A DNA stretch of 64,000 bases from Eutreptiella sp. 'Long Island Sound 2002' (GCA_964036045.1 OZ038378.1:17546001-17610000), one strand, 5' to 3'. Positions 11,501 through 52,100 are shown, numbered from the stretch's first letter. The notes: a model not told the origin generated them from the sequence alone. Made by a program: numbers and translations.

Positions 11501-14500
11501 GCATCTGAAATGTGTCCTGTGGCTGGCTGCTCAACCCACGAAAAGTGTGAGCCAACCTGAGACAATGGACCGAGGGGTGGACCACCCCCACTGTTTGCCG
11601 ACCACGGGGATGCCATCAGGGCCATATCAGCGATGGGATTGCCTGCTCAGAGAGGCCAATGATCTCCAAGCATGAGCACTAGCCCGAGCACAAGCCATGC
11701 TGCCCCCCATCACCACACCAACCTCCTGTTTGTGGTTTCAGGGATGTATGGGACTTCCGCAATCATGACACAGAACCGAAAAGCCACTGCAGTCGCCATG
11801 AGAGGCACCCAAAGTGCCCAAGGTCTGATGCGGGTTGGGTTTAGGTTTGCGCTGTGACTGGGGCTGTGTTGTTGGGCAGAGCGGTGCCACCAGCCCCCGG
11901 GTGAAGCATACGCCAGAGCTGTGCCTTGGGCACGGTCAGAGCAACACGGAGGATCCTCTGCGAAAAGGCAACACACATGAATTCATTCAGATGCTTTCAT
12001 CAGCAATCTGTTCAACTCTTCAACCCCGCACTCAGCTGCGGCTGGTGTGAGCCCCGCCCGCTGCGAAGCTGCATTGTATTCCTGTGGTCAAGTAACGTCC
12101 AGAGCCCCAGGGTGGCCGGCTGTACCGGCCCATCGCCTCTACAACGGTCCGCCACCACGGTTGCCGGTTCCTTGAAGGTGGTGGACCGCTGGCTGCAGCG
12201 GGGTGCTGCTCCGGCACTGCACTCTTTCCTCCATCCCACCTCAATCCTGCCTCCAGTCCGCGGTTTTTCAAGGAGACAGGGACGGACTACCGCCCGGAGC
12301 ATGACCCGGGGGTCGGGAGTTGAGGTGGGAACCGCCAGAGCCGGCACCCGTGAACCCTGTGCGTTGAGAGAGCGGCGTGTAGGACTGAGGGGCCCCTGTG
12401 TCTTCCAGTCCACACTTCTTCTACCGCACATGTCCTGTTTTAGTGGTCCACGGTTTCGTCGCGCCGCGCCCGTCGACAGCGTACGCAGGTGTTTGTGCTC
12501 TTGTCTGTGCGCAGTGGGACGGTGCTGCTGTTGCGTATCGCTGCACCCAAAGCCCCTTGAACGTCATGTCGCTCAATCTGTTTGGCATGACCCCTTCCCG
12601 GGCCAGGCGTCACGCGAGCAAAAAAATCTTCCATGGTTTTTCTTGTTTGTTTTTCTAAACGCGTGAGTCACGCGAGCGCTCGTGTAACACACGGGGAAAA
12701 CGTTGTGAGTGTTTTTGCGCATGCAACAACGGAAAGCCATTCAAAAACATTTTTTCCCGTTGTCGGCGTTGGTCACAAACGGCGCTTTCCGCACTCTCGC
12801 CACTGTTTCATTGCAGTTGCAGATGTCGGACAGGCTCCTGTGCACCCCACAGACGATGTGCAATTCATGTCCGTGCTCGGCCCAAACCCTGTGGCCACAG
12901 AAATTCAGAAAGAATCCGTACACGGTATGCCACTCCGGCAGTGGGATCTCCGAAGGGGCAGGGGGAAGGGGGTCAATCGGGGTGTTTCCTTTTTCGCGCG
13001 ACTTTGGGTTTTACATAGCACACAACGCAGGTAACCGCCGGCGTTTGGTGCGGTTGGTGGTCAAGCGACGGTATTTGATGGTCCACTGACGGCGGTTGGC
13101 CTGTCACCTTCAACGCGGCGGGTGTTCTGGCGAGGCTCACTTGACCATTCATCAGCCACGACGCAAATCATTTTTGGGATGGAATTTTGTTGAAAACCTT
13201 TCGCTGATTCCCACGCAAAGTGATGGCGCTTCTCAGTTCTGGGTCCAGGTGATGCCCGGCGCCATGTCGGGAAGGGGTTCCGGATCTGCTCCATTGTCCA
13301 GGACGGGGACTGTGCCAAAGCACGGGGCCTGGACTGTGTAGGGACAGGGGTGACCTGGGCAGAGGGACAAACAATGCGGGTGCCTGATCGCCCGGTGTCA
13401 ACAACCCGAAGACACGAGTCACTGTGGAGTGTCGTGCTTTGTGGGGTGCGTGTTCGGGTGGCAGCCGACGCCGGTTGACCAGAAACCGAAAGGCAGTTTC
13501 TGGTCGTTCTGGGCATTCGAGTCCGGCAAAGTGCTTTTTCGTGGGCCTTAAGAACAGCCTTACGTCCGTTTGCTGCGGGGCATGGCAGTGCTTCGCTGCG
13601 AGTCCAGAGGTGTAGGGCCTGAGCAGGGGCGTTGGGAACTGTGCATTAGTGTGTGCTGGGGTCTGTGAAGAGGAGATCCACGTCTTGTAATGCCCAATTT
13701 AGAGGAAGTGATATGTCACATCAGGTTGGCCCCCGCACAAAGCGACATTGTGTCCAGACAAACCTTGGAGGGACACATCAGCCAACCCGAACCCAAAAAT
13801 AGAAATCACACGATCGTAATACCTCTTCTCTTGACGGGCGCATCTTTTTTCTGCACTGACAGATGCCACTGGTCCTGCTGGACCAAGACCCACCGATGAT
13901 GTTGACATGATGTCTGCCTTCGGCAAACCTCCAGCTGCGGACCTGATGGACAGTGCCCGAGGTATGACTGCTTCCTACTTTGCAGGGTACAAGGGTGCAT
14001 GGTCGCCAAAATCCTGGCGAGCAAGGCCGTTTGCCATACGTGAAGGAACATTTTTTACTATGGGGACGAAGATGGGAAAGTAGATTTGGCGCACAAACCA
14101 GGAACAGGGGGGCGGGGGGTGCAGGAAGTGTGATGAGTTGTACATGTTAATTACCGAGCTGGGTTTACCCTGTCGAGGTTTTACACCACCTTTTAGGGGC
14201 CAAGGCTGAGCAACACGTTTTAGCAAGCAGCAGCAGCAGCAAGCAGCAGCAGCAAGCAGCAGGCGCATAAAAAGTCCTTGCGACCACACCGCGGCTCAAA
14301 ACCGGCACCCAAGTAGCTCAAAACGACCGGGGAGCCAAGGCGCATCACCACAAACAACTTTGGTTGCATTTCGAGCCGTCTAGCCCGTTCTACGGCCGAT
14401 TTAGTGTCCAAAAATGGCCGTTTTTGGGCTGTTTTCGGCTGTTTTCAGGACGATCGTCCTGAAAGTTCAGGACGATCGCCGCTGCGCCAAGCAGGTGTTT

Positions 14501-17500: not shown

Positions 17501-18876
17501 TTTTCTCAACTGAGTTTGGTGCGTTTGCGTGATTCAGTATTTGGTGTGCACATGCATTGCTCTCGTGACACCTGCAGATGCCACTGGTCGACCACATAGA
17601 CCCACCGATGATGTTGACATGATGTCTGCCTTCGGCAAACCTCCAGCTGCGGACCTGATGGACGGTGCCCGAGGTATGACTGATCCATGCGTTGCGGGGT
17701 AGCGATGTGTGTGTTCAGGTGTTGTGTGCGTGAGTCGAGCACGTGTTTGTGACTGTGTGTGTCGCATTGTGTTGGTACCTCTGCTTCCTCCCCCGCATCC
17801 CAATGATCCCTCGGGCAAGAGACTGGCGGGCGACGGATGCCTCCCAGCCTCCCTGTCGCAAGCGGAGCCTTCACACGTGCGGTGGTGCACTAGTTCCTCA
17901 CCGTAGAGAGGGCCTCCGTAGGGGGAGGGCTGCGGGGCGCTGCGGGGGAGTGGGACGGTGTATCAGAGACGGGTGGTGAGGGATAGCGGGGCGTGACCCG
18001 ACCAGGCCTGGCCAGGGGTACAATCTCCGGGTGGGAAGAGTCCATGTGCGCAAGGAGCCAGCCTCCCACGCTCGCCTGGATGCAGGCGGGGTTGTGCCCG
18101 AGGGTGTCCAGCTCTGTGGCCCAGTCGCCCAGTGTACGGCTGACAGCATCCAGCCTGGTCTGGATCAACCCCCCTGCCGTGTCCACCAGGAATGCAGACG
18201 AGGAGAAGGGGCCGAACTGTCCGCTGCGAGCACAATCCCTGCATTGAAGGTGCCCACAAATGCAGCCTACAACCATGTCCCCCGGGAGGTTGCAGACAGA
18301 GCACGCCAGCGTCCAAGGGTGGGGCCGTCAATACAATCCTGATTTCCACGCAAGCCCCATGAGAGGGCCGAGAGTCACGCTACTTGACCCCGTACCGGTT
18401 GCAGGGCCTTGCGTACTGTGCGGTAGATGGGTACCTGGCCCAAGGTTGTAGTCCAGGGGTCATTGCGGGCTGCAGGTCCTGACCGGGGAGGGTGCACAAT
18501 TGACAATTAGGGACACCACCCACCCCTGGCGAAACAAGAGGGGGACAAGCACCTCGCTGCATGGGAGGCGGGGATCCCCCGATGGATAAGGTGCACGGTC
18601 CATGCACCACTGCTGTCGGTATCTACTGCCACGCGAGCCGCCGGGGCACACATTTGGTGCGTTTGCGTGATTCACTATTTGGTGTGCACATGCATTGCTC
18701 TCGTCACGTACGCAGATGCCACTGGTCCTGCTGGACCAAGACCACATAGACCCACCGATGATGTTGACATGATGTCTGCCTTCGGCAAACCTCCAGCTGC
18801 GGACCTGATGGACAGTGCCCGAGGTATGACTGATCCATGCGTTGCTGGGTAGCGATGTGTGTGTTCAGGTGCTCTA

Positions 18877-18925
<49 letters not shown>

Positions 18926-21900
18926 AAAGAGACGTGTCCGTCAAGAGAAGAGACATCACGATCATTTTGTTACTGGTTTTGGGTTGAAGCTGGCTGGTGT
19001 GCTCATATGCATGTCACACACGAGCACACAACATGCGTGCCACGAGTGCCACCGGAAACCACCTGCAACCGCCCTTACCCCTTTCAGGCACTCCAATCCA
19101 AAGGCACGTTCAGGACTCCTGTTCCGAGGGCGGAGGGGTGCACCGGACCCCCATTTTACAGAGGGCGGGGCTGGGAAGTGGGGTGTAACGCCTGGCGGCC
19201 TGAGTTGAGCGGTGAGCACGAGCACAGACCAGGTCACGACCTGGGGGGGGGGGGGGATGCGGGAGGGCTGAGACAGACCCAAAGGGCTCGTTGGAGGGTG
19301 GGGTTGAGGCCGTACATGTATGCCGTGAGCAAATCACCAGCTCACCTCGTGGACCCTTGACTGGCTTGTGGACGGGGGAAGAGACTGGCGGGCGACGGAT
19401 GCCTCCCAGCCTCCCTGTCGCAAGCGGAGCCTTCACACGTGTGGTGGTGCACTAGTTCCTCACCGTAGAGAGGGCCTCCGTAGGGGGAGGGCTGCGGGGC
19501 GCTGCGGGGGAGGGGGACGGTGTATCAGAGACGGGTGGTGAGGGATAGCGGGGCGTGACCCGACCAGGCCTGGCCAGGGGTACAATCTCCGGGTGGGAAG
19601 AGTCCATGTGCGCAAGGAGCCAGCCTCCCACGCTCGCCTGGATGCAGGCGGGGTTGTGCCCGAGGGTGTCCAGCTCTGTGGCCCAGTCGCCCAATGTACG
19701 GCTGACAGCATCCAGCCTGGTCTGGATCAACCCCCCTGCCGTGTCCACCAGGAATGCAGACGAGGAGAAGGGGCCGAACTGTCCGCTGCGAGCACAATCC
19801 CTGCATTGAAGGTGCCCACAAATGCAGCCTACAACCATGTCCCCCGGGAGGTTGCAGACAGAGCACGCCAGCGTCCAAGGGTGGGGCCGTCAATACAATC
19901 CTGATTTCCACGCAAGCCCCATGAGAGGGCCGAGAGTCACGCTACTTGACCCCGTACCGGTTGCAGGGCCTTGCGTACTGTGCGGTAGATGGGTACCTGG
20001 CCCAAGGTCGTAGTCCAGGGGTCATTGCGGGCTGCAGGTCCTGACCGGGGAGGGTGCACAATTGACAATTAGGGACACCACCCACCCCTGGCGACACAAG
20101 AGGGGGACAAGCACCTCGCTGCATGGGAGGCGGGGATCCCCCGATGGATAAGGTGCACGGTCCATGCACCACTGCTGTCGGTATCTACTGCCATGCGAGC
20201 CGCCGGGGCACACATTTGGTGCGTTTGCGTGATTCACTATTTGGTGTGCACATGCATTGCTCTCGTCACGTACGCAGATGCCACTGGTCCTGCTGGACCA
20301 AGACCACATAGACCCGGCGGTGATGTTGACATGATGTCTGCCTTTGGCAAACCTCCAGCTGCGGACCTGATGGACAGTGCCCGAGGTATGACTGATCCAT
20401 GCGTTGCCGGGTAGCGATGTGTGTGTTCAGGTGTTGTGTTCGTGAGTCGATCATGTGTTTGTGACTGTGTGTGTCACATTGTGTTGGTACCTCTGCTTCC
20501 TCCCCCGCATTCCAATGATCCCTCGGCTGCTGCACCTGTTGCACCCTTTTCCTCGCTTGTTCACTGGAAGCAGCGCACATCTCATCTTCCTGTGAAGCAC
20601 CGCCACAGGTCGATGTCGTGTGGTCTGACCACCACCCTCACGACCCGCTGGGTGGTCTGTGCCAATCTGCAGGGGGATGTTTTGGGGGGGGGGGTCACTT
20701 TTCTGCAGGCGCTTGTCGCAGGCGACTCCTGGCGCCATCACGGCGCCGAATCAGTGACAAGAGGGTGGTTTGACACACAAAACGGATGTGGACGCCTGAG
20801 CTGGATGTCCCGTCTGGCGATGGGCGCTAGGGCGAGTCGGATTGCGGAAACAAGGGACAGGAACCGGGGGCTAATGGACATGGCCATCAATCAGCCACTC
20901 TGAGGTCTGGAGGCACAGTAGCCGAAAAGAAACGTGTGTGGGATCTCCGTGTTGCGCCCTTCGCACGTTCAGATGGTCCTCATGACGATGACGCCGGGGA
21001 CGACCACGATGAGGATTGGATGTCGCGGATGCGCGACAAGAGAATCACGAGTATACCCGACCTGCCTGATGGTGTTGATATGATGTCTGCATTCGGGAGG
21101 CCTCCTGCTGCGGATTTGATGGATAGCGCTCGAGGTGCGCCAACCATACCACCCTTTGCCTCTACGGCTCATCTAAGATTCAGACTCCTGAGAGACTCCA
21201 CCTGTGTGTGTCAGTGTGTCAGTCTGTGTGTACATGAGAGAGAGAGAGAGAGAGTGAGGGTGTGTGTGAGAGTGTGTCAGTCTGTGTGTATGTGTGTGAG
21301 AGAGAGGGTGTGTGTGTTAGTGTCATGTTTGTGACTCGTTGCACCTTTGTGTAGTAGAGCTGGTGTATAGGCAACGGGCCTTAAAATGACCCCAACAGCT
21401 TTTTGTGGACAGATTTGTTTGCCCTCATGATGAACACCTCAAAACATCATCTGGTAGTCATTTTGCGGTATGGAGGGCCTACCTGTATTGCACACGGGGG
21501 AACGGTCTGGCCGCGACTTGTAGACCTCAGATTTGCAAATTGGAGGAGAGAAATGCGCTCTTTCGGGCCCATTGGCCTTTTGCACGGCACGTGTTATCAC
21601 TATGCCTGTTGCTTGTGCGCAACCCAGACATCCCCTCATGTGCACAGCACCGACAAAATACAAATGGACCTCAAAAACTAAAGCAGTAATGATCATCAGT
21701 TGTCAGGAGCTTAGGTAAGCCACAGCCAGTCCTGGCCAGGGAACAAGGGAAATCCGCAAACCAACGCAACGGGAGGGCCATGGCATGTGATTGCTTGATC
21801 GATTTCAGAACAACCATGACCATCACAATCCATTCGACCTGGACTTCGGCTTTCGTCATTGCTGACAGTGTTGCCGGTCTTCGTGGCGTGTTTCAGGCAT

Positions 21901-23367
21901 CTGCATGACACACCACACACTATGCGCTGGGGGCCGGTTGTAAGCGCTTCTCTGCCGTTTGTACCCTGTACAGCGGTTGTTCATTCTAACCCGATGCCCC
22001 TTTCTGTTGGTCTCTCTGGCTGTCCATGTCCAGACGTGTGGTTATAGCTGTGCATACCAATGAGCAGCAAGAGTGCACAACCGTGCGTTCATGATCTGCA
22101 CAACTATGGGCGACAGTGTGCCCCTTTACAGCAAGTTTTTTCTCGACTGGATGCCCTGTAAGTGCTGGCCACGTCCGATTGTGGTGTTCATTGGTATAAC
22201 ACCGGAGAGCTGCGTTCGGTAGACGCTTCAGGTATTTCCAGTGAAAAATCGCTTGAATCGGAACAATTTGACTGAAACATCAAGATTTTAACGCTGCTGA
22301 AACACACCATAAGAATTTTTATGCCACATGATCCCCAAAGTTGGTGCACATCCACTGTTCCATTACGCTGCCTTGTGGATGTGCCAACTGCTCCTTTTTG
22401 ACTTTTTCTATTGGGAAGTAGTCAAAATACTTTCAAATTTTTGTAGCATGTGTGCACTCGTTCCGGGGTTTCCTTTTGAAGCTCCTAGCGGAGTTGGCAT
22501 GTATAATTATAGAGGTTTTCGTTGCGTGAGAATTTAGTAGCCATCAATTTTTTCAGTACAAGTTTAGAACACGCTGGAACATGCCAATTTAGGACATTCC
22601 AGGGTTTCTGAGTTTGTGGGTGGGAGGTGTTGGTTGGCCTTTGCTTCTTTGTTGACCACCAGTTTTATGTCTCAAAAAGCACCCCAGTACAACAATTGAC
22701 AAGACTCCTCCTCCACTCCACTTGGCAGGTGCCCAAAACTCGCTAGACCCCACTTAATAGGGCAATGCGCCCTCTCATCACGCCACTTCGCTCAGTGGGG
22801 TGCTGACATGGTGATGCTGGACTAGGAATGACTGGGGTCTTAGTTCAGTCCCTTTAAACAGACATGCCACTGGCACCTATTTTTTCTCGGACCATCCGGC
22901 GGTCTGTAGGTAATTGTCTTGCAGGTTTTCCGGCATTTTTCAATTCCAAGTGTACAAGTGTACACAATTGTGCAACTGTGCGTAACTGTGTGAAGCAATT
23001 AGGTGCAAGTGTGCGTGACTGTGCATCCATGTGGTGCACAAGCGTGCATTGGCGTGCACACATGGCTATAATCACATGTCTGCCGCTGTATATTTCCTCT
23101 GTGTAGGTGTCAAGTTACGATCCTTGTGCATGCTTTGTGGGTTTGCTTGTTTCGTGTCTATCTTCTGAGTGGGTGTGCACATGCATTGCTCTCGTCACGT
23201 ACGCAGATGCCACTGGTCCTGCTGGATCAAGACCACATAGACCCACCGATGATGTTGACATGATGTCTGCCTTCGGCAAACCTCCAGCTGCGGACCTGAT
23301 GGACAGTGCCCGAGGTATGACTGATCCATGCGTTGCCGGGTAGCGATGTGTGTGTTCAGGTGCTCTA

Positions 23368-23408
<41 letters not shown>

Positions 23409-26400
23409 AAAGAGACGTGTCCGTCAAGAGAAGAGATATCACGATCATTTTGTCACTGGTTTTGGGTTGAAGCTGGCTGGTGTGCTCATATGCATGTCAC
23501 ACACGAGCACACAACATGCGTGCCACGAGTGCCACCGGAAACCACCTGCAACCGCCCTTACCCCTTTCAGGCACTCCAATCCAAAGGCACGTTCAGGACT
23601 CCTGTTCCGAGGGCGGAGGGGTGCACCGGACCCCCATTTTACAGAGGGCGGGGCTGGGAAGCGGGGTGTAACGCCTGGCGGCCTGAGTTGAGCGGTGAGC
23701 ACGAGCACAGACCAGGTCACGACCTGGGGGGGGGGGGGATGCGGGAGGGCTGAGACAGACCCAAAGGGCTCGTTGGAGGGTGGGGTTGAGGCCGTACACG
23801 TATGCCGTGAGCAAATCACCAGCTCACCTCGTGGACCCTTGACTGGCTTGTGGACGGGGGAAGAGACTGGCGGGCGACGGATGCCTCCCAGCCTCCCTGT
23901 CGCAAGCGGAGCGTTCACACGTGTGGTGGTGCACTAGTTCCTCACCGTAGAGAGGGCCTCCGTAGGGGGAGGGCTGCGGGGCGCTGCGGGGGAGTGGGAC
24001 GGTGTATCAGAGACGGGTGGTGAGGGATAGCGGGGCGTGACCCGACCAGGCCTGGCCAGGGGTACAATCTCCTGGTGGGAAGAGTCCATGTGCGCAAGGA
24101 GCCAGCCTCCCACGCTCGCCTGGATGCAGGCGGGGTTGTGCCCGAGGGTGTCCAGCTCTGTGGCCCAGTCGCCCAGTGTACGGCTGACAGCATCCAGCCT
24201 GGTCTGGATCAACCCCCCTGCCGTGTCCACCAGGAATGCAGACGAGGAGAAGGGGCCGAACTGTCCGCTGCGAGCACAATCCCTGCATTGAAGGTGCCCA
24301 CAAATGCAGCCTACAACCATGTCCCCCGGGAGGTTGCAGACAGAGCACGCCAGCGTCCAAGGGTGGGGCCGTCAATACAATCCTGATTTCCACGCAAGCC
24401 CCATGAAAGGGCCGAGAGTCACGCTACTTGACCCCGTACCGGTTGCAGGGCCTTGCGTACTGTGCGGTAGATGGGTACCTGGCCCAAGGTCGTAGTCCAG
24501 GGGTCATTGCGGGCTGCAGGTCCTGACCGGGGAGGGTGCACAATTGACAATTAGGGACACCACCCACCCCTGGCGACACAAGAGGGGGACAAGCACCTCG
24601 CTGTATGGGAGGCGGGGATCCCCCGATGGATAAGGTGCACGGTCCATGCACCACTGCTGTCGGTATCTACTGCCATGCGAGCCGCCGGGGCACACATTTG
24701 GTGCGTTTGCGTGATTCACTATTTGGTGTGCACATGCATTGCTCTCGTCACGTACGCAGATGCCACTGGTCCTGCTGGACCAAGACCACATAGACCCGGC
24801 GGTGATGTTGACATGATGTCTGCCTTTGGCAAACCTCCAGCTGCGGACCTGATGGACAGTGCCCGAGGTATGACTGATCCATGCGTTGCCGGGTAGCGAT
24901 GTGTGTGTTCAGGTGCTCTATCTGTGTGTGTGTGTGTGTAAAGAGACGTGTCCGTCAAGAGAAGAGATATCACGATCATTTTGTTACTGGTTTTGGGTTG
25001 AAGCTGGCTGGTGTGCTCATATGCATGTCACACACGAGCACACAACATGCGTGCCACGAGTGCCACCGGAAACCACCTGCAACCGCCTTTACCCCTTTCA
25101 GGCACTCCAATCCAAAGGCACGTTCAGGACTCCTGTTCCGAGGGCGGAGGGGTGCACCGGACCCCCATTTTACAGAGGGCGGGGCTGGGAAGCGGGGTGT
25201 AACGCCTGGCGGCCTGAGTTGAGCGGTGAGCACGAGCACAGACCAGGTCACGACCTGGGGGGGGGGGGGATGCGGGAGGGCTGAGACAGACCCAAAGGGC
25301 TCGTTGGAGGGTGGGGTTGAGGCCGTACATGTATGCCGTGAGCAAATCACCAGCTCACCTCGTGGACCCTTGACTGGCTTGTGGACGGGGGAAGAGACTG
25401 GCGGGCGACGGATGCCTCCCAGCCTCCCTGTCGCAAGCGGAGCCTTCACACGTGTGGTGGTGCACTAGTTCCTCACCGTAGAGAGGGCCTCCGTAGGGGG
25501 AGGGCTGCGGGGCGCTGCGGGGGAGGGGGACGGTGTATCAGGGACGGGTGGTGAGAGATAGCGGGGCGTGACCCGACCAGGCCTGGCCAGGGGTACAATC
25601 TCCGGGTGGGAAGAGTCCATGTGCGCAAGGAGCCAGCCTCCCACGCTCGCCTGGATGCAGGCGGGGTTGTGCCCGAGGGTGTCCAGCTCTGTGGCCCAGT
25701 CGCCCAATGTACGGCTGACAGCATCCAGCCTGGTCTGGATCAACCCCCCTGCCGTGTCCACCAGGAATGCAGACGAGGAGAAGGGGCCGAACTGTCCGCT
25801 GCGAGCACAATCCCTGCATTGAAGGTGCCCACAAATGCAGCCTACAACCATGTCCCCCGGGAGGTTGCAGACAGAGCACGCCAGCGTCCAAGGGTGGGGC
25901 CGTCAATACAATCCTGATTTCCACGCAAGCCCCATGAGAGGGCCGAGAGTCACGCTACTTGACCCCGTACCGGTTGCAGGGCCTTGCGTACTGTGCGGTA
26001 GATGGGTACCTGGCCCAAGGTCGTAGTCCAGGGGTCATTGCGGGCTGCAGGTCCTGACCGGGGAGGGTGCACAATTGACAATTAGGGACACCACCCACCC
26101 CTGGCGACACAAGAGGGGGACAAGCACCTCGCTGTATGGGAGGCGGGGATCCCCCGATGGATAAGGTGCACGGTCCATGCACCACTGCTGTCGGTATCTA
26201 CTGCCATGCGAGCCGCCGGGGCACACATTTGGTGCGTTTGCGTGATTCACTATTTGGTGTGCACATGCATTGCTCTCGTCACATCCGCAGATGCCACTGG
26301 TCCTGCTGGACCAAGACCACATAGACCCACCGATGATGTTGACATGATGTCTGCCTTCGGCAAACCTCCAGCTGCGGACCTGATGGACAGTGCCCGAGGT

Positions 26401-26451
26401 ATGACTGATCCATGCGTTGCCGGGTAGCGATGTGTGTGTTCAGGTGCTCTA

Positions 26452-26504
<53 letters not shown>

Positions 26505-28014: not shown

Positions 28015-28053
<39 letters not shown>

Positions 28054-29565: not shown

Positions 29566-29600
<35 letters not shown>

Positions 29601-31111: not shown

Positions 31112-31146
<35 letters not shown>

Positions 31147-40100: not shown

Positions 40101-43100
40101 TTTGTGATATTGCATTGCGGGTCCGGTTCGGCGTAGTTGTAGATTGTGGGTCGCTTTGACAACCTCGTCATTGGTATTTCCACGTGGCGTGGTGTGTGTA
40201 CAGGCCCCAGGCAAGGAGCCAATGGTCCAGGTGGCCTTGGAGCCGGCCGGACTCCGGCAGATGATGCTGACATGATGTCTGCGTTTGGCAAACCTCCCAA
40301 TGCGGATCTGATGGACAGCAGTCGCGGTATGACCGGTTCATGCATTGTCGCCTGGTGGCGTGCAGGGGCTTGCGTGTGTGTGATTGCGGTTTTGCGAGTC
40401 ATAGCGGAATGAGGAAGCATGGGGAATGGTTGATGCGTGATGCATCGGGCAGTGGTACAGATTGTCATGCTAGGGAGTGGTATGGGTTGTAGAATGGACA
40501 CGGGGTGATGGGTTTTGATCTGCTTTCATTGACCAGGATGATGTCCCTGTGCGAGTGCGCTGGGCTTTGCATTTGTGTGTCGGAGTGACTGTGCAGACTT
40601 GGTAGCGACGTGGCGTACGGGGTAGGGATGCATTTTGGTGCTGTGTGGGCAATCGGACAACGGTGGGGCGTGTACATTGGTGCACGTCAGCAGGCGCTGT
40701 AGGATGGGGGCTGCGGTTATATGATTGTTTGATGTTGGACGCCACGTCCACGCTTTGCAGTGCTGTGGAACTGCGCGTGCTGTTCCCTGTGTTGCCCTGG
40801 AGCGTGTTGTGTGTGTGTAGTGCCGCCAGTTGCACTCATCACGGTCCATGTGCAGTCCCGAAGCAAGGTGCGGATGGTCCATCTGGACCGGGCGCTGGCA
40901 TACCGCATGACGACGCCATGATGATGTCTGCATTCGGTCGAAATCCTCGTGCGGATCTGATGGACAGTGTTGTAGGTTTGAATGCCGCACGCTGCAGTGT
41001 GAACGGTGGTCTGATTTGTTGTGCGATGGCATACGTCTCATGCGAGACGCATGTGCCTTGTTCACACTGTGCAAGGCCCAAGGAGCAGGGGCACATATAC
41101 ACAGGGCAAGGGCATACGGGGTAATAGTGCATGCATTTATTTGGTGGGGGCGATCAGCACACGATAGTGAGTGGCGGGCGGCTGTGGATGGGCACAACTG
41201 TGCAAGTGGGTGCCATATGTGAGGTTGCCCTGTGCAGGAATGGTTGATGCAGATGGTTTGTGATATTGCATTGCGGGTCCGGTTCGGCGTAGTTGTAGAT
41301 TGTGGGTCGCTTTGACGTCCTCGTCATTGGTATTTCCACGTGGCGTGGTGTGTGTACAGGCCCCAGGCAAGGAGCCAATGGTCCAGGTGGCCTTGGAGCC
41401 GGCCGGACTCCTGCAGATGATGCTGACATGATGTCTGCGTTTGGCAAACCTCCCAATGCGGATCTGATGGACAGCAGTCGCGGTATGACCGGTTCATGCA
41501 TTGTCGCCTGGTGGCGTGCAGGGGCTTGCGTGTGTGTGATTGCGGTTTTGCGAGTCATAGCGGAATGAGGAAGCATGGGGAATGGTTGATGCGTGATGCA
41601 TCGGGCAGTGGTACAGATTGTCATGCTAGGGCGTGGTATGGGTTGTAGAATGGACACGGGGTGATGAGTTTTGATCTGCTTTCATTGACCAGGATGATGT
41701 CCCTGTGCGAGTGCGCTGGGCTTTGCATTTGTGTGTCGGAGTGACTGTGCAGACTTGGTAGCGACGTGGCGTACGGGGTAGGGATGCATTTTGGTGCTGT
41801 GTGGGCAATCGGACAACGGTGGGGCGTGTACATTGGTGCACGTCAGCAGGCGCTGTAGGATGGGGGCTGCGGTTATATGATTGTTTAATGTTGGACGCCA
41901 CGTCCACGCTTTGCAGTGCTGTGGAACTGCGCGTGCAGTTCCCTGTGGTGCCCTGGAGTGTGTTGTGTGTGTGTAGCGGCCAGTTGCACTCATCACGGTC
42001 CATGTGCAGTCCCGAAGCAAGGTGCGGATGGTCCATCTGGACCGGGCGCTGGCATACCGCATGACGACGCCATGATGATGTCTGCATTCGGTCGAAATCC
42101 TCGTGCGGATCTGATGGACAGTGTTGTAGGTTTGAATGCCGCACGCTGCAGTGTGAACGGTGGTCTGATTTGTTGCGCGATGTCATACGTCTCATGCGAG
42201 ACGCGTGTGCTTTGTTCACACTGTGCAAGGCCCAAGGAGCAGGGGCACATACACACAGGGCAAGGGCATACGGGGTAATAGTGCATGCATTTATTTGGTG
42301 GCGGCGATCAGCACACGATAGTGAGTGGCGGGCGGCTGTGGATGGGCACAACTGTGCAAGTGGGTGCCATATGTGAGGTTGCCCTGTGCAGGACTGGTTG
42401 ATGCAGATGGTTTGTGATATTGCATTGCGGGTCCGGTTCGGCGTAGTTGTAGATTGTGGGTCGCTTTGACGACCTCGTCATTGGTATTTCCACGTGGCGT
42501 GGTGTGTGTACAGGCCCCAGGCAAGGAGCCAATGGTCCAGGTGGCCTTGGAGCCGGCCGGACTCCTGCAGATGATGCTGACATGATGTCTGCGTTTGGCA
42601 AACCTCCCAATGCGGATCTGATGGACAGCAGTCGCGGTATGACCGGTTCATGCATTGTCGCCTGGTGGCGTGCAGGGGCTTGCGTGTGTGTGATTGCGGT
42701 TTTGCGAGTCATAGCGGAATGAGGAAGCATGGGGAATGATTGATGCGTGATGCATCGGGCAGTGGTACAGATTGTCATGCTAGGGCGTGGTATGGGTTGT
42801 AGAATGGACACGGGGTGATGAGTTTTGATCTGCTTTCATTGACCAGGATGATGTCCCTGTGCGAGTGCGCTGGGCTTTGCATTTGTGTGTCGGAGTGACT
42901 ATGCAGACTTGGTAGCGACGTGGCGTACGGGGTAGGGATGCATTTTGGTGCTGTGTGGGCAATCGGACAACGGTGGGGCGTGTACATTGGTGCACGTCAG
43001 CAGGCGCTGTAGGATGGGGGCTGCGGTTATATGATTGTTTGATGTTGGACGCCACGTCCACGCTTTGCAGTGCTGTGGAACTGCGCGTGCTGTTCCCTGT

Positions 43101-46100
43101 GGTGCCCTGGAGCGTGTTGTGTGTGTGTAGCGGCCAGTTGCACTCATCACGGTCCATGTGCAGTCCCGAAGCAAGGTGCGGATGGTCCATCTGGACCGGG
43201 CGCTGGCATACCGCATGACGACGCCATGATGATGTCTGCATTCGGTCGAAATCCTCGTGCGGATCTGATGGACAGTGTTGTAGGTTTGAATGCCGCACGC
43301 TGCAGTGTGAACGGTGGTCTGATTTGTTGCGCGATGTCATACGTCTCATGCGAGACGCGTGTGCTTTGTTCACACTGTGCAAGGCCCAAGGGGCAGGGGC
43401 ACATACACACAGGGCAAGGGCATACGGGGTAATAGTGCATGCATTTATTTGGTGGCGGCGATCAGCACACGATAGTGAGTGGCGGGCGGCTGTGGATGGG
43501 CACAACTGTGCAAGTGGGTGCCATATCTCTCGGGGACATTCATAATATGCCAACGCGGAGCAAATTCGTGTATTTTCAGGGTTTTCACCATTTTTCGTCC
43601 AGAGCACCAAAATTTCATTCCGTAGGGGGGCGTATGTGTGTACTTTTTGAAATCTGTGAGAAAAGGCCATTTCAGAAATGCATGGGTTAGGGGGGGGTAG
43701 CTGACGATATTTTTGAGCATCGAGGCCAAACTTTTCGTTGTTTGCACGATTTTCGACCCCAGGTTGCTGCAAAGTCGGCACGCAAACATGCACTGAATGT
43801 TTCACACTTGCTTATTCCGAATCGTCATTTGCGCTGTCTTTTTCAGGCAGGGCTGGGACCCCATTTGGGCAGACATCACCATGCTTATTGTTAGGAACAT
43901 ATTTTTTCAGCTTTTGCCAATCCTGCAACCTGCGGCTCTTTACCGGTACCCACCCTGAATTCAGAGGCATTGCCCAGAGACCATCTGTTGTGAGGTCAAC
44001 ATTCCGTTGCTTGGTCAGCCTCACCTTGCGCCACTCAATGGACTCGCTGTACCCTGCTTTCATCCAGGTAAAACCAGGGTGAGGGGAAAGGCTGCCCTCA
44101 TCAGGGGTGGTGCCAAAATCCAACCACTTGATTTTGTGGTCCCGAATCAACACAGGTTTTTTATGCTGGTCCAAATGGTCGGACGACGATGCGTAGGCAC
44201 CTGCCAGCCAACGGCTGACGTCCCAGAAATCATTTCTGGTCAGGATGCGCAGTTTTCTGACGAATCGTTGTTTGTTGCGCACCACATGCTGGATTGTTAG
44301 GCCAGCCATATCTGTTAGACCATAATAGTAATCCACATTCTGCAGGGCGCGGTCCATGGCACGTGATGCGGCATCGCACAGGTTGTACGAGTGGCCCTTA
44401 ATGAAAATGCACCACGAAACGCGATGGAACCAGCGCCACTGCACTAGTTTTTACAAATAGCTTACAAAAATTCCAATTCAGGAACTCAGAACAACAACCG
44501 TCAGTATGAATAAAAAGGTGGCCAGCCCCAGTGGAGCACCGATACAGCTCCCCAATGAGGGCTGAGGCGGTTTCGTTAAAACCCTTCCCAGCCACGTATT
44601 CTGGCCACACCATCACCGTATCAATGCCAACAGTGGTGCGGTGCACCACCAGGCGGTGGGCCTTCAACTCTGACGTGTACCATTTCTCGCCGACGGGCAG
44701 TTTCAAGAGACTCATTGCTTTGCTGTAGTCCAAAACAATGTGCTCTGCCCGGTCACTGTGGCGAACCCCAGGGGTGGTATACGTCGTCAATTTCGCTGAA
44801 CCCCAGGTCTGCATGCTGTACTGACCATGGTACTTGTTTCGGTCGTATCCCTCGCTGGCCAATCGTAAATGCGTGGCCTGCTGGTGCTGAAGTTTGGCCT
44901 GAAAATGGGCAAAAAACAGCGGCACAGACGAAACAAAAAGAAACGAAAACGGAGGATCGCAGGGGTGGAGCATAACAACCTTCAAAGCAGGTGGGGCTGT
45001 CCGGATTTGAAGGTTGTACAGCTCACACTCGGCACACGTATCCTTCAGCGGTGCTTGGTATCCCAACTTAAACGTTTTCATTGTTCGCTGTGCCGTTTTC
45101 AGTGAAATCTGAGGCTGGAAATCTGCTTTGCCTCGCTTTGCAAACTGGTCCGGCTCCTCGTTTTGCAGCCAGTGGATCCAAACATTATATGGGGAAGCGC
45201 GGCGTCCACCGACCGGGGCCAAATGCACCGTGTCCGTGTTTGCACGTGCGGCGTCGCTGAAACGGTTCTCAGCTTGCGGCAGGCCCTGCAGAAATTTCTC
45301 AAACCTCAATTTGACCGGGGCAGCTCGCCGGGTGTTGACCACAGCCTTTTTCTCTGGACTCCTCATGGGACTCAGGGGGGTGGCAATGGCCGCGGCTGCT
45401 TTGGCTTTGGCCACAGACTCCACAACGATGCGACTGATCTTGAAATAGTGGAGGAACTGGGTCTTACAAATTTGTCGCCGCGACCCACGGTACGTTACAA
45501 AATACGTTGTCTGGTGCCCCCTCTTCCTGGTGTACTTCTGGCGACCTGCATGTTTCACATTTTGCTCCAAAGTGACGTCGATGCAGGTAGCCAGAAATTC
45601 TTGTTGCGAAGCCTTGGTGGGGTGAGTCTTTTTATCCCAAAACTGGGCTGCAAAAGCCGCGGCCTCAGTAGTGGATAAAATGTCGTGCTCTGCGTGGTCG
45701 CATGCAGGCTGCTGTGACCCACCTGTACGAGGCTTTTTGGCGCGCGGGTCAGGCTGCCGGGTCACCCGCACCCAATTTTCACCCGCAGAGCGCGCTCTTT
45801 TTCGCACCAAAGGTTTCAGTGGCGCATCAGGGGAAGCAACAGCACGTTGTGTGAATTTGTATGACGACATGGTGGCTGCCTGTTAACAAAAATAGGCAGC
45901 GGGCAACACAGGCACCGTCCAAAGCGGACAAAAATCTCAAACATGTCGTTAGCACAGCATGCAAACCTGGGGTGTTCCGAATAGCCCTTTTCAAGGGCTT
46001 TCCGAAAATGACCCACATACCCCCCCCAACCGGACACTCAGCGGGCACAAATGAGGCCACAAAGGCACCAACCCCTGAAAACGCTCCGTGTTGGCATGAA

Positions 46101-49100
46101 ACCGGATGTCCCCGAGAGATATGTGAGGTTGCCCTGTGCAGGACTGGTTGATGCAGATGGTTTGTGATATTGCATTGCGGGTCCGGTTCGGCGTAGTTGT
46201 AGATTGTGGGTCGCTTTGACGTCCTCGTCATTGGTATTTCCACGTGGCGTGGTGTGTGTACAGGCCCCAGGCAAGGAGCCAATGGTCCAGGTGGCCTTGG
46301 AGCCGGCCGGACTCCTGCAGATGATGCTGACATGATGTCTGCGTTTGGCAAACCTCCCAATGCGGATCTGATGGACAGCAGTCGCGGTATGACCGGTTCA
46401 TGCATTGTCGCCTGGTGGCGTGCAGGGGCTTGCGTGTGTGTGATTGCGGTTTTGCGAGTCATAGCGGAATGAGGAAGCATGGGGAATGGTTGATGCGTGA
46501 TGCATCGGGCAGTGGTACAGATTGTCATGCTAGGGCGTGGTATGGGTTGTAGAATGGACACGGGGTGATGGGTTTTGATCTGCTTTCATTGACCAGGATG
46601 ATGTCCCTGTGCGAGTGCGCTGGGCTTTGCATTTGTGTGTCGGAGTGACTGTGCAGACTTGGTAGCGACGTGGCGTACGGGGTAGGGATGCATTTTGGTG
46701 CTGTGTGGGCAATCGGACAACGGTGGGGCGTGTACATTGGTGCACGTCAGCAGGCGCTGTAGGATGGGGGCTGCGGTTATATGATTGTTTAATGTTGGAC
46801 GCCACGTCCACGCTTTGCAGTGCTGTGGAACTGCGCGTGCTGTTCCCTGTGGTGCCCTGGAGCGTGTTGTGTGTGTGTAGCGGCCAGTTGCACTCATCAC
46901 GGTCCATGTGCAGTCCCGAAGCAAGGTGCGGATGGTCCATCTGGACCGGGCGCTGGCATACCGCATGACGACGCCATGATGATGTCTGCATTCGGTCGAA
47001 ATCCTCGTGCAGATCTGATGGACAGTGTTGTAGGTTTGAATGCCGCACGCTGCAGTGTGAACGGTGGTCTGATTTGTTGCGCGATGTCATACGTCTCATG
47101 CGAGACGCGTGTGCTTTGTTCACACTGTGCAAGGCCCAAGGGGCAGGGGCACATACACACAGGGCAAGGGCATACGGGGTAATAGCACATGCATTTATTT
47201 GGTGGGGGCGATCAGCGCACGATAGTGAGTGGCGGGCGGCTGTGGATGGGCACAACTGTGCAAGTGGGTGCCATATGTGAGGTTGCCCTGTGCAGGACTG
47301 GTTGATGCAGATGGTTTGTGATATTGCATTGCGGGTCCGGTTCGGCGTAGTTGTAGATTGTGGGTCGCTTTGACGACCTCGTCATTGGTATTTCCACGTG
47401 ACGTGGTGTGTGTACAGGCCCCAGGCAAGGAGCCAATGGTCCAGGTGGCCTTGGAGCCGGCCGGACTCCTGCAGATGATGCTGACATGATGTCTGCGTTT
47501 GGCAAACCTCCCAATGCGGATCTGATGGACAGCAGTCGCGGTATGACCGGTTCATGCATTGTCGCCTGGTGGCGTGCAGGGGCTTGCGTGTGTGTGATTG
47601 CGGTTTTGTGAGTCATAGCGGAATGAGGAAGCATGCGGAATGGTTGATGCGTGATGCATCGGGCAGTGATACAGATTGTCATGCTAGGGCGTGGTATGGG
47701 TTGTAGAATGGACACGGGGTGATGGGTTTTGATCTGCTTTCATTGACCAGGATGATGTCCCTGTGCGAGTGCGCTGGGCTTTGCATTGTGTGTCGGAGTG
47801 ACTGTGCAGACTTGGTAGCGACGTGGCGTACGGGGTAGGGATGCATTTTGGTTCTGTGTGGGCAATCGGACAACGGTGGGGCGTGTACATTGGTGCACGT
47901 CAGCAGGCGCTGTAGGATGGGGACTGCGGTTATATGATTGTTTGATGTTGGACGCCACGTCCACGCTTTGCAGTGCTGTGGAACTGCGCGTGCTGTTCCC
48001 TGTGGTGCCCTGGAGCGTGTTGTGTGTGTGTAGCGGCCAGTTGCACTCATCACGGTCCATGTGCAGTCCCGAAGCAAGGTGCGGATGGTCCATCTGGACC
48101 GGGCGCTGGCATACCGCATGACGACGCCATGATGATGTCTGCATTCGGTCGAAATCCTCGTGCAGATCTGATGGACAGTGTTGTAGGTTTGAATGCCGCA
48201 CGCTGCAGTGTGAACGGTGGTCTGATTTGTTGCGCGATGTCATACGTCTCATGCGAGACGCGTGTGCTTTGTTCACACTGTGCAAGGCCCAAGGGGCAGG
48301 GGCACATACACACAGGGCAAGGGCATACGGGGTAATAGCACATGCATTTATTTGGTGGGGGCGATCAGCGCACGATAGTGAGTGGCGGGCGGCTGTGGAT
48401 GGGCACAACTGTGCAAGTGGGTGCCATATGTGAGGTTGCCCTGTGCAGGACTGGTTGATGCAGATGGTTTGTGATATTGCATTGCGGGTCCGGTTCGGCG
48501 TAGTTGTAGATTGTGGGTCGCTTTGACGACCTCGTCATTGGTATTTCCACGTGGCCTGGTGTGTGTACAGGCCCCAGGCAAGGAGCCAATGGTCCAGGTG
48601 GCCTTGGAGCCGGCCGGACTCCTGCAGATGATGCTGACATGATGTCTGCGTTTGGCAAACCTCCCAATGCGGATCTGATGGACAGCAGTCGCGGTATGAC
48701 CGGTTCATGCATTGTCGCCTGGTGGCGTGCAGGGGCTTGCGTGTGTGTGATTGCGGTTTTGCGAGTCATAGCGGAATGAGGAAGCATGGGGAATGATTGA
48801 TGCGTGATGCATCGGGCAGTGGTACAGATTGTCATGCTAGGGCGTGGTATGGGTTGTAGAATGGACACGGGGTGATGGGTTTTGATCTGCTTTCATTGAC
48901 CAGGATGATGTCCCTGTGCGAGTGCGCTGGGCTTTGCATTTGTGTGTCGGAGTGACTGTGCAGACTTGGTAGCGACGTGGCGTACGGGGTAGGGATGCAT
49001 TTTGGTGCTGTGTGGGCAATCGGACAACGGTGGGGCGTGTACATTGGTGCACGTCAGCAGGCGCTGTAGGATGGGGGCTGCGGTTATATGATTGTTTAAT

Positions 49101-52100
49101 GTTGGACGCCACGTCCACGCTTTGCAGTGCTGTGGAACTGCGCGTGCTGTTCCCTGTGGTGCCCTGGAGCGTGTTGTGTGTGTGTAGCGGCCAGTTGCAC
49201 TCATCACGGTCCATGTGCAGTCCCGAAGCAAGGTGCGGATGGTCCATCTGGACCGGGCGCTGGCATACCGCATGACGACGCCATGATGATGTCTGCATTC
49301 GGTCGAAATCCTCGTTCAGATCTGATGGACAGTGTTGTAGGTTTGAATGCCGCACGCTGCAGTGTGAACGGTGGTCTGATTTGTTGCGCGATGTCATACG
49401 TCTCATGCGAGACGCGTGTGCTTTGTTCACACTGTGCAAGGCCCAAGGGGCAGGGGCACATACACACAGGGCAAGGGCATACGGGGTAATAGCACATGCA
49501 TTTATTTGGTGGGGGCGATCAGCGCACGATAGTGAGTGGCGGGCGGCTGTGGATGGGCACAACTGTGCAAGTGGGTGCCATATGTGAGGTTGCCCTGTGC
49601 AGGACTGGTTGATGCAGATGGTTTGTGATATTGCATTGCGGGTCCGGTTCGGCGTAGTTGTAGATTGTGGGTCGCTTTGACGACCTCGTCATTGGTATTT
49701 CCACGTGGCGTGGTGTGTGTACAGGCCCCAGGCAAGGAGCCAATGGTCCAGGTGGCCTTGGAGCCGGCCGGACTCCTGCAGATGATGCTGACATGATGTC
49801 TGCGTTTGGCAAACCTCCCAATGCGGATCTGATGGACAGCAGTCGCGGTATGACCGGTTCATGCATTGTCGCCTGGTGGCGTGCAGGGGCTTGCGTGTGT
49901 GTGATTGCGGTTTTGCGAGTCATAGCGGAATGAGGAAGCATGGGGAATGGTTGATGCGTGATGCATCGGGCAGTGGTACAGATTGTCATGCTAGGGCGTG
50001 GTATGGGTTGTAGAATGGACACGGGGTGATGGGTTTTGATCTGCTTTCATTGACCAGGATGATGTCCCTGTGCGAGTGCGCTGGGCTTTGCATTTGTGTG
50101 TCGGAGTGACTATGCAGACTTGGTAGCGACGTGGCGTACGGGGTAGGGATGCATTTTGGTTCTGTGTGGGCAATCGGACAACGGTGGGGCGTGTACATTG
50201 GTGCACGTCAGCAGGCGCTGTAGGATGGCGACTGCGGTTATATGATTGTTTGATGTTGGACGCCACGTCCACGCTTTGCAGTGCTGTGGAACTGCGCGTG
50301 CAGTTCCCCGTGGTGCCCTGGAGCGTGTTGTGTGTGTGTAGCGGCCAGTTGCACTCATCACGGTCCATGTGCAGTCCCGAAGCAAGGTGCGGATGGTCCA
50401 TCTGGACCGGGCGCTGGCATACCGCATGACGACGCCATGATGATGTCTGCATTCGGTCGAAATCCTCTTGCGGATCTGATGGACAGTGTTGTAGGTTTGA
50501 ATGCCGCACGCTGCAGTGTGAACGGTGGTCTGATTTGTTGCGCGATGGCATACGTCTCATGCGAGACGCGTGTGCTTTGTTCACACTGTGCAAGGCCCAA
50601 GGGGCAGGGGCACATACACACAGGGCAAGGGCATACGGGGTAATAGCACGTGCATTTATTTGGTCCGTGGGCGATCAGTACACCAGCCTTCCTGATGCCG
50701 TGCTTTATTGCTTCCTCGCTACGTCTGCGTTTTTCACCATCACGTTGTATGCGGCTGTTGTTTCTTGTCGTCACCGCATGTTTTTTATTTGTATTCTCAC
50801 GAAATGCAACTCAGTGTCTCTGGCCAGAGTCACCGGCAGGCGTTAATTGCGGTTGTGCATGCCAGTCGTTGATTTCAATTTCCCACCGCAGTTGACGGTT
50901 GATTCTGTCTCAAACCTGCGGTGTAAAGGCTAGGCTCCCTATTTTGTTTTCTTTTGGACAACCGTCATAGACAAATTCCAGGGACAAGTGCCATGGAGGG
51001 CGTTCCGCTTTCTCTTATGGCCCTCCATCGTCCGCCGATTGATTTCAAGAGATTGGATCGTGTACAATGCACCTGCTCGCGGCCTCCGTCTCCGTACCAC
51101 CTCGTCTATGTGCAGGGCCAAGACAGGTGGACAGCGAGGCGGGTTCAGGCACTGATGCAGAGCTCATGAGGTCCTGTTTCATGGGCTCTCTGCCAAAGAT
51201 ACGCAGAGGTCTGAGGGGTGTGCGTGTACTGGTGCGGCTGGAGGGGCTGGGCGTGTTGCTCGTGTTCGGCACAAGGGCATACGCTGCCTGTGGTGGTTGA
51301 GGGGTTCGGTGCAGGGGAAGTGGGCATATTGGGCTCCTCATAGGACGAGGCTGGCATGAGATTACGGCGTCGTTGATGAAATATTCGAGGGCAAAGGGAT
51401 TTGTTTCATGATCAGGGGTACACGATCATTTGTACTCTCTGGGTACTTTCCACTGTGTTATGCACAGCACCGGTGGAACGGAAGCCGTCCCCGTCAGGCA
51501 TCCGCGAGGGCAGTCAACTGCCTCCTCAATTGATGTCGCACATCAGCCGGGACATCCCCAAGGCGGTCCATATGGATCTATGTATGACGCTGTCCCTCCC
51601 TCCCTCCCTCCCTCCCTCCCTCCCTCCCTCCCTCCCTCCCTCCCTCCCTCCCTCCCTCCCTCCCTCCCTCCCTCCCTCCCTCCCTCCCTCCCTTTTTCTC
51701 TCCCCGCGTGCGTGCGTGTGCGTGTGTGCACCCTCGGTGGGTTTTTTTGTGTGTTTGTGGCAACACGCATTCAAACATGGGCTCGCCACTAACCATCCAA
51801 TGTCATGCCTTTCACACACATGATGTGCATGCACCACCGCTGCCCTGCTGCCGCCATGGGCAGTGCCAATGCTGGTCATAAGCCCTGCAACACATGGTTT
51901 TGCTGCGCATTTTTGGCCGTGGTGACAACTGAAGAGGTAACCAAGTCGCTTTTATGGTTCTGGGTCAGTCCGAACTGACAGGACAATTTCGGGCAAACAC
52001 ATGGAATGCTGCACGCATAGTGTTTTGTTTGTGGCAGCCTGCTCAAGGCAGTGGATGCACAGGTTTTTTTTATGCCGTTGACTCTACAGAGTGACTCTAT

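Follow-up and report, generated by a model that had tools for sequence, protein, structure and literature searches.

A tandem array of 38 exons encoding a conserved 22-residue motif in the putative cytoplasmic tail of a giant adhesin-like protein from Eutreptiella

The motif exons and the constraint acting on them

The 64,000-nt stretch of genomic DNA from Eutreptiella sp. 'Long Island Sound 2002' (GCA_964036045.1, OZ038378.1:17546001-17610000), hereafter the window, carries a part of a gene in which short exons encode the same acidic 22-residue motif over and over again. A six-frame scan of the window detected 38 MMSAFG-type cores between 13.9 and 50.5 kb, all on the plus strand and none on the minus strand. 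Each core sits in a short exon with a CAG acceptor and a GT donor (38/38), as determined by DNA reading and a splice-site search, with the donor being GTATGA in 23 exons, GTTTGA in 13 and GTGCGC in two. Both ends of all 38 exons are in phase 1, the intron splitting a codon after its first base, and the exon lengths (96-162 nt) are without exception multiples of 3, adding up to 4527 nt with no stop codon. The copy number, coordinates and exon lengths listed in an initial annotation of this DNA proved to be correct.

The exons belong to four families, namely A (11 copies), C (two), B1 (13) and B2 (12). Family A exons are 108 nt long save the first two, 13863-13961 (99 nt) and 17578-17673 (96 nt), and the C, B1 and B2 copies have lengths of 162, 120 and 123 nt, respectively. 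The order is four A exons, one C, seven A, the second C, and then B1 and B2 alternating 12 times with a last B1 at the end, the alternation being strict, as expected of a duplicated two-exon unit. In every unit a mildly basic spacer, 12-18 residues long and rich in Gly and Pro, precedes the acidic motif, which has Met and Phe at its hydrophobic positions. The core of the motif holds as initially described, with several exceptions: both C copies carry DG where the motif has DD, the copy at 17619 reads LMDG, the copy at 49286 reads SDLMDS, and in three A copies G replaces T/D directly ahead of the motif.

The family consensus cores (22 codons) compared by the Nei-Gojobori method differ by 0.9-2.5 substitutions per synonymous site (dS) and by 0.04-0.29 per nonsynonymous site (dN), giving dN/dS values of 0.02-0.23, well below 1. 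The pooled ratio of nonsynonymous to synonymous differences (pN/pS) in the family consensus alignments is 0.25 in frame versus 1.10 and 1.06 in the two shifted frames, and Fisher tests for two independent pairs gave p=2.7e-7 (A-C) and p=1.3e-3 (B1-B2). With dN/dS this low and silent sites near saturation, the claim that the differences in the core between families are mostly synonymous is borne out, and all the codon examples offered for it (Ala GCC/GCG/GCA, Phe TTC/TTT, Gly GGC/GGT/GGG, Pro CCA/CCC/CCT, Asp GAC/GAT, Leu CTG/TTG, Ser AGT/AGC and Arg CGA/CGC) were found in the family consensus. The last 67 nt of the exon show 72-82% identity across families (z of 8-14 versus shuffles), and the between-family similarity of the 100 nt of intron on each side is at or near the noise level (z mostly 0-3). 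Since the cores are alike, the silent sites saturated and the intron flanks at noise, the families are old, with only the coding core being held.

Within a family, exon and intron diversity are about equal at ~1% each, which shows that the present copy number stems from recent tandem amplification or homogenisation. There are 11 gapped columns in the B introns, 38 in the A introns and none in the exons, and the B unit varies in length from 1153 to 1161 nt; indels among units are thus confined to introns, and the lengths of the A exons (96, 99 and 108 nt) are in frame, both as noted before. In a set of 23 diverged cores from 11 loci, pairwise at least 8 nt apart, the reading frame has a pN/pS of 0.39 and no stops. 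The other five frames all contain stops, and their ratios are near 1 with the exception of the antisense frame sharing wobble positions (0.59), so equal conservation in another frame or strand, which the initial annotation had named as evidence against a real motif, does not occur. The motif is a real coding element under purifying selection, and selection has kept it intact.

Gene architecture, paralogs and serial splicing

The layout of the gene was read from comparison with its paralogs in the same genome, mainly P0003, a 2193-residue open reading frame (ORF) on a 7.5-kb JGI transcript contig, and L031, an intronless locus. Searches for the window gene used single exons, intronless paralogs or paralog cDNA, and computation across junctions was limited to the identity of the split codon at each junction. 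In P0003, two consecutive VWA domains (Pfam E 1.8e-47) are followed by Ser-Pro linkers, a PAN-like segment containing Cys, the family-specific ectodomain and a single membrane helix, after which come motif repeats which decay toward the C-terminus, and the window gene is collinear with it from the VWA exons to the membrane helix. In window coordinates, the VWA exons lie at about -43.6 to -40.7 kb and -34.6 to -32.6 kb; the exon ~43.6 kb upstream matches PF00092 with E 2.3e-12 (47.9 bits, cutoff 23.8), and the second VWA copy was found by tblastn. They are followed by five PAN_3-like exons from -29 to -26.3 kb, one of which passes PAN_3 (PF08277) narrowly with 22.5 bits at a gathering cutoff of 21.1, the PAN_1 (PF00024) score of 16.3 bits being below the cutoff, and by ectodomain exons from -19 kb to +9.4 kb. 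The ectodomain ORF 4565-5767 includes a Ser-Pro repeat coding stretch at 4984-5338 (CCCCTC/TCCCCC hexamer arrays), a hydroxyproline-glycoprotein-like linker which is present in paralogs too.

The membrane stretch PFPWLLLL...LCL and the K/R-rich residues after it are conserved in the window gene, L031 and P0003. The paralog helix was modelled by AlphaFold2 (AF2) with a predicted local distance difference test score (pLDDT) of 78-92, and the model of the membrane-proximal ectodomain was poor (pLDDT 42). No signal peptide was seen, the 5' ends being incomplete. Judging by the basic stretch that follows the helix, the repeats would be cytosolic and the VWA and PAN domains with the glycosylation-type linkers would lie on the opposite side, so the product would be a single-pass type I adhesin-like protein with a cytoplasmic repeat tail. 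This tail may go on past the 38 exons, to judge from weak matches to decayed copies at 52.4, 56.8 and 57.5 kb; the C-terminal end of the window gene could not be mapped by homology, as the distal tails are too diverged. The gene, whose VWA exons start ~44 kb upstream of the window, spans at least ~95 kb, or roughly 100 kb.

The motif occurs genome-wide: a profile of the exon translations detected at least 150 scored exon-like copies (736 first-look candidates) at no fewer than 10 loci of the same 2.28-Gb genome. Arrays are located on contigs C25 (at least 74 units), C10 (three places), C6 and C26, and intronless versions on C13 and C11; at seven loci there is an ectodomain homolog upstream of the array on the same strand. 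Among 117 collected cores (60 distinct DNA versions, 11 loci), M6, F9 and P13 are invariant over the DNA versions and M5, S7, A15, M18 and D19 nearly so. All four codons are used for Pro13, Ala3 and Ala15, and both AGY and TCN for Ser20. The genome-wide consensus is D-D-A-[QDE]-M-M-S-[EA]-F-G-[RK]-[DPN]-P-[ND]-A-D-[LM]-M-D-[STG]-[TVA]-R, with ~13 constrained positions over the 22 residues. Its conserved layout, in which the hydrophobic clusters M5-M6-x-x-F9 and [LM]17-M18 are separated by G-[RK]-x-P and surrounded by Asp, suggests an element folding upon binding and not a classic 3-6-residue motif.

The largest array seen (G000:C25:15915371-15947356, minus strand) possesses at least 74 scored motif exons with a period of ~435 nt and the variant DD[VI]NMMSQFGKPPGADMMDT, and an ectodomain homolog is located upstream of it at ~15.966-15.971 Mb. 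L031 (G000:C13:14694001-14704000) includes an ORF of 985 residues, at the end of which lie a hydrophobic helix and basic residues, and the next ORF, of 1278 residues, is made up of motif units head to tail. Neither L031 nor L042/L050 (G000:C11:~68.357 Mb) has introns in the ectodomain or tail. In one intronless member the near-perfect 36-residue units number more than 50, and a single frameshift lies at ~L042:6000. Elsewhere in the family each unit has an intron, in the same codon phase throughout, so the presence of both kinds of genes points to either intron loss by retroposition or massive co-duplication of introns.

A profile search of 1.84 billion representative proteins gave only 20 matches, and all those for which the source was checked come from this organism's data. 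They include P0002, a Eutreptiella braarudii MMETSP0810 transcript peptide, P0003, and P0001, encoded on an ENA contig 100% identical to G000:C11, and most of the remaining matches are short ORFs on ENA contigs resembling a long-read assembly of the same organism. With a 250-residue paralog tail as query, a word-based search of proteins returned four matches, all ENA records apparently from the same organism's assembly, and with the 985-residue ectodomain ORF it returned none, probably having been swamped by low-complexity words. In metagenome contigs, an exact-pattern scan found no window-type exons and a profile-guided scan no relative, though the collections may not include this organism's records. 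Pfam has no family matching either the family-specific ectodomain or the tail ORFs, matches in the ESM Atlas did not rise above chance, and a full-text literature search for the motif strings yielded no relevant paper. With no relatives outside this organism's data in the sources checked, the family is apparently lineage-restricted.

The transcript contig of P0003 (L041) maps at 98-100% identity onto G000:C25:5349764-5413873, and the cDNA contains all 16 consecutive one-motif tail exons (mostly 96 nt), each flanked by cag and gt. The tail exons of this expressed paralog are spliced consecutively. Likewise, the P0002 transcript peptide joins two consecutive L040 exons with 100% identity, and L031 and L042 string 20 to more than 50 units together within a single ORF, where the junction residue Ala (TR-A-R) is the product expected from splicing of paralog arrays such as L036/L038. 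For the window gene, we infer from this homology and from the frame-preserving design that the exons are included in series.

A putative docking tail and competing explanations

The product of the 38 exons contains 14% Ala, 14% Gly, 14% Asp, 13% Pro and 9% Met (G+P 27.5%) and has a net charge of -68. Trp is nearly absent, with two residues in 1,471, both in the C exons, and there are 38 FG dipeptides. For 250 residues of the L031 tail AF2 predicted no secondary structure (pLDDT 46), and this model together with the composition indicates that the tail is probably disordered. Thus, of the disordered multivalent docking tail proposed in the initial annotation, the acidic Gly/Pro-rich character stands and the disorder is probable, while docking is an interpretation. 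It nevertheless seems most reasonable to suggest that the repeats form a multivalent docking array on the cytoplasmic tail, and this is the reading that the data support best.

According to this model, the 38 exons would encode ~1,500 residues of the cytoplasmic tail of one gene starting ~44 kb upstream of the window, and the protein would comprise two VWA domains, five PAN-like domains, the family-specific ectodomain, one membrane helix, a basic stop-transfer stretch and the tail. Serial inclusion of the exons would give a disordered tail in which dozens of identical sites would each recruit one copy of a putative cytosolic or cortical partner, and the adhesive ectodomain might thereby be coupled with high avidity to something under the membrane, be it the pellicle, the cytoskeleton or the trafficking machinery. 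The symmetric design with one unit per exon would allow unequal crossing-over to alter the copy number with the frame kept. Taken as a whole, the explanation by a giant adhesin-like gene with serial exons and a multivalent cytoplasmic docking tail is considered rather probable.

Several points weigh against it. The docking partner and the binding itself are putative, the disorder call made by AF2 from a single sequence is weak evidence, and the recent copies within a family, where exon diversity equals that of introns, give no selection signal. No transcript of the window gene was found in scans of collections which may not include this organism's records. The C exons could be alternative terminal exons, because their ORF continues beyond the weak GTGCGC donor, for ~40 codons in the case of the first C exon. 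Finally, complementary elements in the A part of the array could mean that blocks of exons are skipped in a regulated manner and not all 38 are included. One of them, 76 nt long (13774-13849) and situated just before the first A exon, shows 75-76% complementarity to a sequence that lies ~105 nt past seven of the A exons, and a 34-39-nt element at 17470-17508, upstream of the second A exon, is 82-85% complementary to the same seven sites (18926-19001, 23409-23484, 24940-25015, 26505-26580, 28054-28129, 29601-29676 and 31147-31222), which follow a (GT)n run.

If such RNA pairing looped out exon blocks or made exons mutually exclusive, the arrays would be a menu and the mRNAs would differ in their units. 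This explanation, which concerns the use of the array and is compatible with a docking function, draws on the complementarity just described and on the fact that choice of this kind usually operates on tandem homologous exons of equal phase. It is nonetheless judged unlikely: all the exon lengths are multiples of 3, which keeps the frame on joint inclusion, B1 and B2 alternate as a duplicated two-exon unit would, 16 of 16 tail exons are present in one paralog cDNA (which also argues against exclusivity of the Dscam type, with one exon per mRNA), the intronless paralogs carry their units serially, and a complementarity of 75% is weak and could belong to an inverted fragment of an intronic repeat. 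An improbable explanation of the motif itself is that the Asp/Met-rich tail is a high-capacity buffer binding Ca2+ or soft metals such as Cu(I), with the motif kept for coordination geometry. The composition, the net charge and the conserved spacing of the three to four Met and five to six Asp residues per motif would agree with this, but coordination leaves unexplained why Phe9, Gly10, Pro13 and Ala15 are as conserved as Met and Asp, and no EF-hand or other metal-binding family was matched. Moreover, Cu(I) sites built on Met typically occur in oxidising compartments, while the basic residues that follow the helix would put the tail in the cytosol.

The initial annotation had also drawn an analogy with the clathrin/AP2-binding tails of AP180, in which case the units would recruit clathrin and AP-2 through their SAF and DLM elements. 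The likeness is a loose one, limited to an acidic disordered multivalent tail and to DLM resembling DLL/DLF, and the analogy fails in several respects, so that we regard this role as very improbable. None of the patterns DLL/DLF, DPF/W, FxDxF, NPF, clathrin-box, acidic dileucine or gamma-ear occurs in the 38 exons, the L031, L042 and P0003 tails have zero or one such match, the position of DLM is often occupied by E-M-M or T-M-M in paralogs, and the core is far longer than endocytic motifs. Nor is there an ANTH domain, Pfam giving only VWA in P0003 and VWA and PAN_3 in the upstream exons of the window gene. Copies within a family that are ~99% identical, introns included, the lack of a transcript and a ~3-kb insertion in one intron could also be expected of satellite or transposon-borne pseudo-exons or of a dead copy of the family. 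This last reading is extremely improbable in our view, its satellite or transposon form being rejected: the ORF has no stops, the 38 pairs of splice sites are intact, the constraint between families is frame-specific, and the upstream ectodomain exons are intact and collinear as well. Two further candidates were set aside as improbable. One is an FG nucleoporin, given one FG per ~39 residues in the context of surface-adhesin domains, and the other a peptide precursor, for which some paralogs have dibasic flanks that the window gene lacks.

As for known systems, the protein with its predicted docking tail can be compared with the TRAP/MIC2 gliding adhesins and micronemal PAN/apple adhesins, which share with it the type I topology, extracellular VWA (A/I) and/or PAN/apple domains and a single helix. 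Their cytoplasmic tail is also acidic and couples the adhesin to machinery under the membrane. However, TRAP/MIC2 proteins contain thrombospondin type-1 repeats (TSR), none of which was matched in P0003 by Pfam, and have a short tail with a sub-terminal Trp in place of more than 1,500 residues of repeats almost without Trp; they belong to apicomplexans and not to a euglenid, the tails are unrelated in sequence, and the function in Eutreptiella is putative. The AP180/CALM (DLL/DLF) and Eps15 (DPF) tails are likewise disordered, acidic and Gly/Pro-containing, with many short elements adding avidity, but they are parts of soluble proteins and have 3-6-residue motifs, unlike the long core of this membrane protein.

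Sfi1 has centrin-binding repeats and nebulin 35-residue actin-binding repeats; both are helical and basic, with known partners. In general terms, the window gene resembles them in having dozens of ~33-41-residue units with a conserved core, in repeat number setting valency or length, and in growth by unit duplication, and differs in its acidic, predicted disordered repeats and putative partner. FG nucleoporins also have a disordered region with regularly spaced (S)xFG, matched here by one FG per unit, but conservation in the present family goes far beyond FG, and the VWA/PAN domains, the Ser-Pro- and Thr-Pro-rich linkers and, in paralog L031, many N-x-S/T sites are typical of a cell-surface protein and not of the nuclear pore. 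What is new is the motif, the family and its scale, with a disordered multivalent tail on an adhesion receptor and repeat expansion via symmetric exons being familiar.

A linear motif of this length that stays constant over hundreds of copies with saturated silent sites would mark a functional binding element. The surface and pellicle biology of euglenids is poorly known at the molecular level, and the genes described make up a family of giant adhesin-like receptors in this group that is unreported and apparently restricted to the lineage. On a broader view, to which we give only a small chance, Eutreptiella would have evolved an adhesion-to-cortex coupling of its own, with at least 10 giant VWA/PAN adhesins, each bearing a private docking motif of 22 residues in anything from a few to more than 70 copies, whose valency could be tuned by crossing-over of exon units and perhaps per transcript by RNA-pairing-guided skipping. 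If this were true, these adhesins would act like TRAP/MIC2-glideosome connectors or integrin-talin links, via extreme multivalency. The motif peptide could serve as a ready bait for components beneath the euglenid membrane, and the phase-symmetric unit exons beside intronless sister genes offer a system for studying repeat-protein expansion and intron loss or copying.

Feature coordinates and minor observations

Table 1 Features of the window, in window coordinates. The motif exons (A, B1, B2 and C) rest on DNA reading and a splice-site search. Percentages are sequence identities. HMM, hidden Markov model.
Feature	Position	Strand	Basis
Ectodomain exon, family-specific domain	4646..4906	+	tblastn 62% to P0003 residues 1167-1254, 55% to L031 ORF
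Ectodomain exon after SP-rich linker	5345..5623	+	tblastn to P0003 residues 1257-1341
Ectodomain exon, Cys-rich CYxxCTxxCYKDELG segment	6233..6352	+	78% to P0003 residues 1331-1367; alignment
Membrane-proximal ectodomain exon	8545..8832	+	71% to P0003 residues 1368-1458; alignment
Exon, ectodomain end and first half of membrane helix	9159..9380	+	tblastn, alignment; paralog helix model
Exon, second half of membrane helix and basic stop-transfer stretch (KTWKRH...)	10965..11090	+	tblastn to L031 residues 928-966, P0003 tail start
First, degenerate motif copy (HPTDDVQFMSVLGPNPVA...)	12837..12932	+	HMM E 0.13; tblastn to P0001
Exon A1 (99 nt)	13863..13961	+	
Exon A2 (96 nt; LMDG variant)	17578..17673	+	
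Exon A3 (108 nt)	18716..18823	+	
Exon A4	20278..20385	+	
Exon C1 (162 nt; longer acidic N-terminal part)	20973..21134	+	
Exon A5	23207..23314	+	
Exon A6	24760..24867	+	
Exon A7	26291..26398	+	
Exon A8	27854..27961	+	
Exon A9	29405..29512	+	
Exon A10	30951..31058	+	
Exon A11	32498..32605	+	
Exon C2	33195..33356	+	
Exon B1-1 (120 nt)	33925..34044	+	
Exon B2-1 (123 nt)	34429..34551	+	
Exon B1-2	35079..35198	+	
Exon B2-2	35583..35705	+	
Exon B1-3	36233..36352	+	
Exon B2-3	36737..36859	+	
Exon B1-4	37386..37505	+	
Exon B2-4	37890..38012	+	
Exon B1-5	38547..38666	+	
Exon B2-5	39051..39173	+	
Exon B1-6	39700..39819	+	
Exon B2-6	40204..40326	+	
Exon B1-7	40856..40975	+	
Exon B2-7	41360..41482	+	
Exon B1-8	42010..42129	+	
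Exon B2-8	42514..42636	+	
Exon B1-9	43164..43283	+	
Exon B2-9 (after 2980-nt intron holding insertion)	46264..46386	+	
Exon B1-10	46914..47033	+	
Exon B2-10	47418..47540	+	
Exon B1-11	48067..48186	+	
Exon B2-11	48571..48693	+	
Exon B1-12 (SDLMDS variant)	49221..49340	+	
Exon B2-12	49725..49847	+	
Exon B1-13	50375..50494	+	
Possible degenerate tail copy (...DPDLEATMMDS...), tentative	52392..52511	+	Weak HMM match E 11; like decayed distal repeats of P0003, P0001
Possible degenerate tail copy (...MPDATVMDFTR...), tentative	56752..56871	+	Weak HMM match E 2.1
Possible degenerate tail copy (...IPDATIMDFAR...), tentative	57511..57630	+	Weak HMM match E 12

The intron 43284-46263, leading from a B1 to a B2 exon, is 2980 nt long versus the usual 384 nt. 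The additional ~3 kb of DNA lacks the GC skew of its surroundings and is probably a mobile-element insertion; two minus-strand ORFs of 490 aa (44398-45870) and 210 aa (43812-44444) in this intron have no Pfam matches. The intron after the first C exon (21135-23206, ~2 kb) is AT-richer than its surroundings and does not resemble the other A introns. The region 20658-21559 around this exon and a stop-carrying 'exon D' has a rearranged copy (L037, G000:C1:180378001-183000), 73-84% identical, located 163 Mb away on the same contig, and as the similarity reaches into the flanks of exon C, the block must have been moved or copied as DNA.

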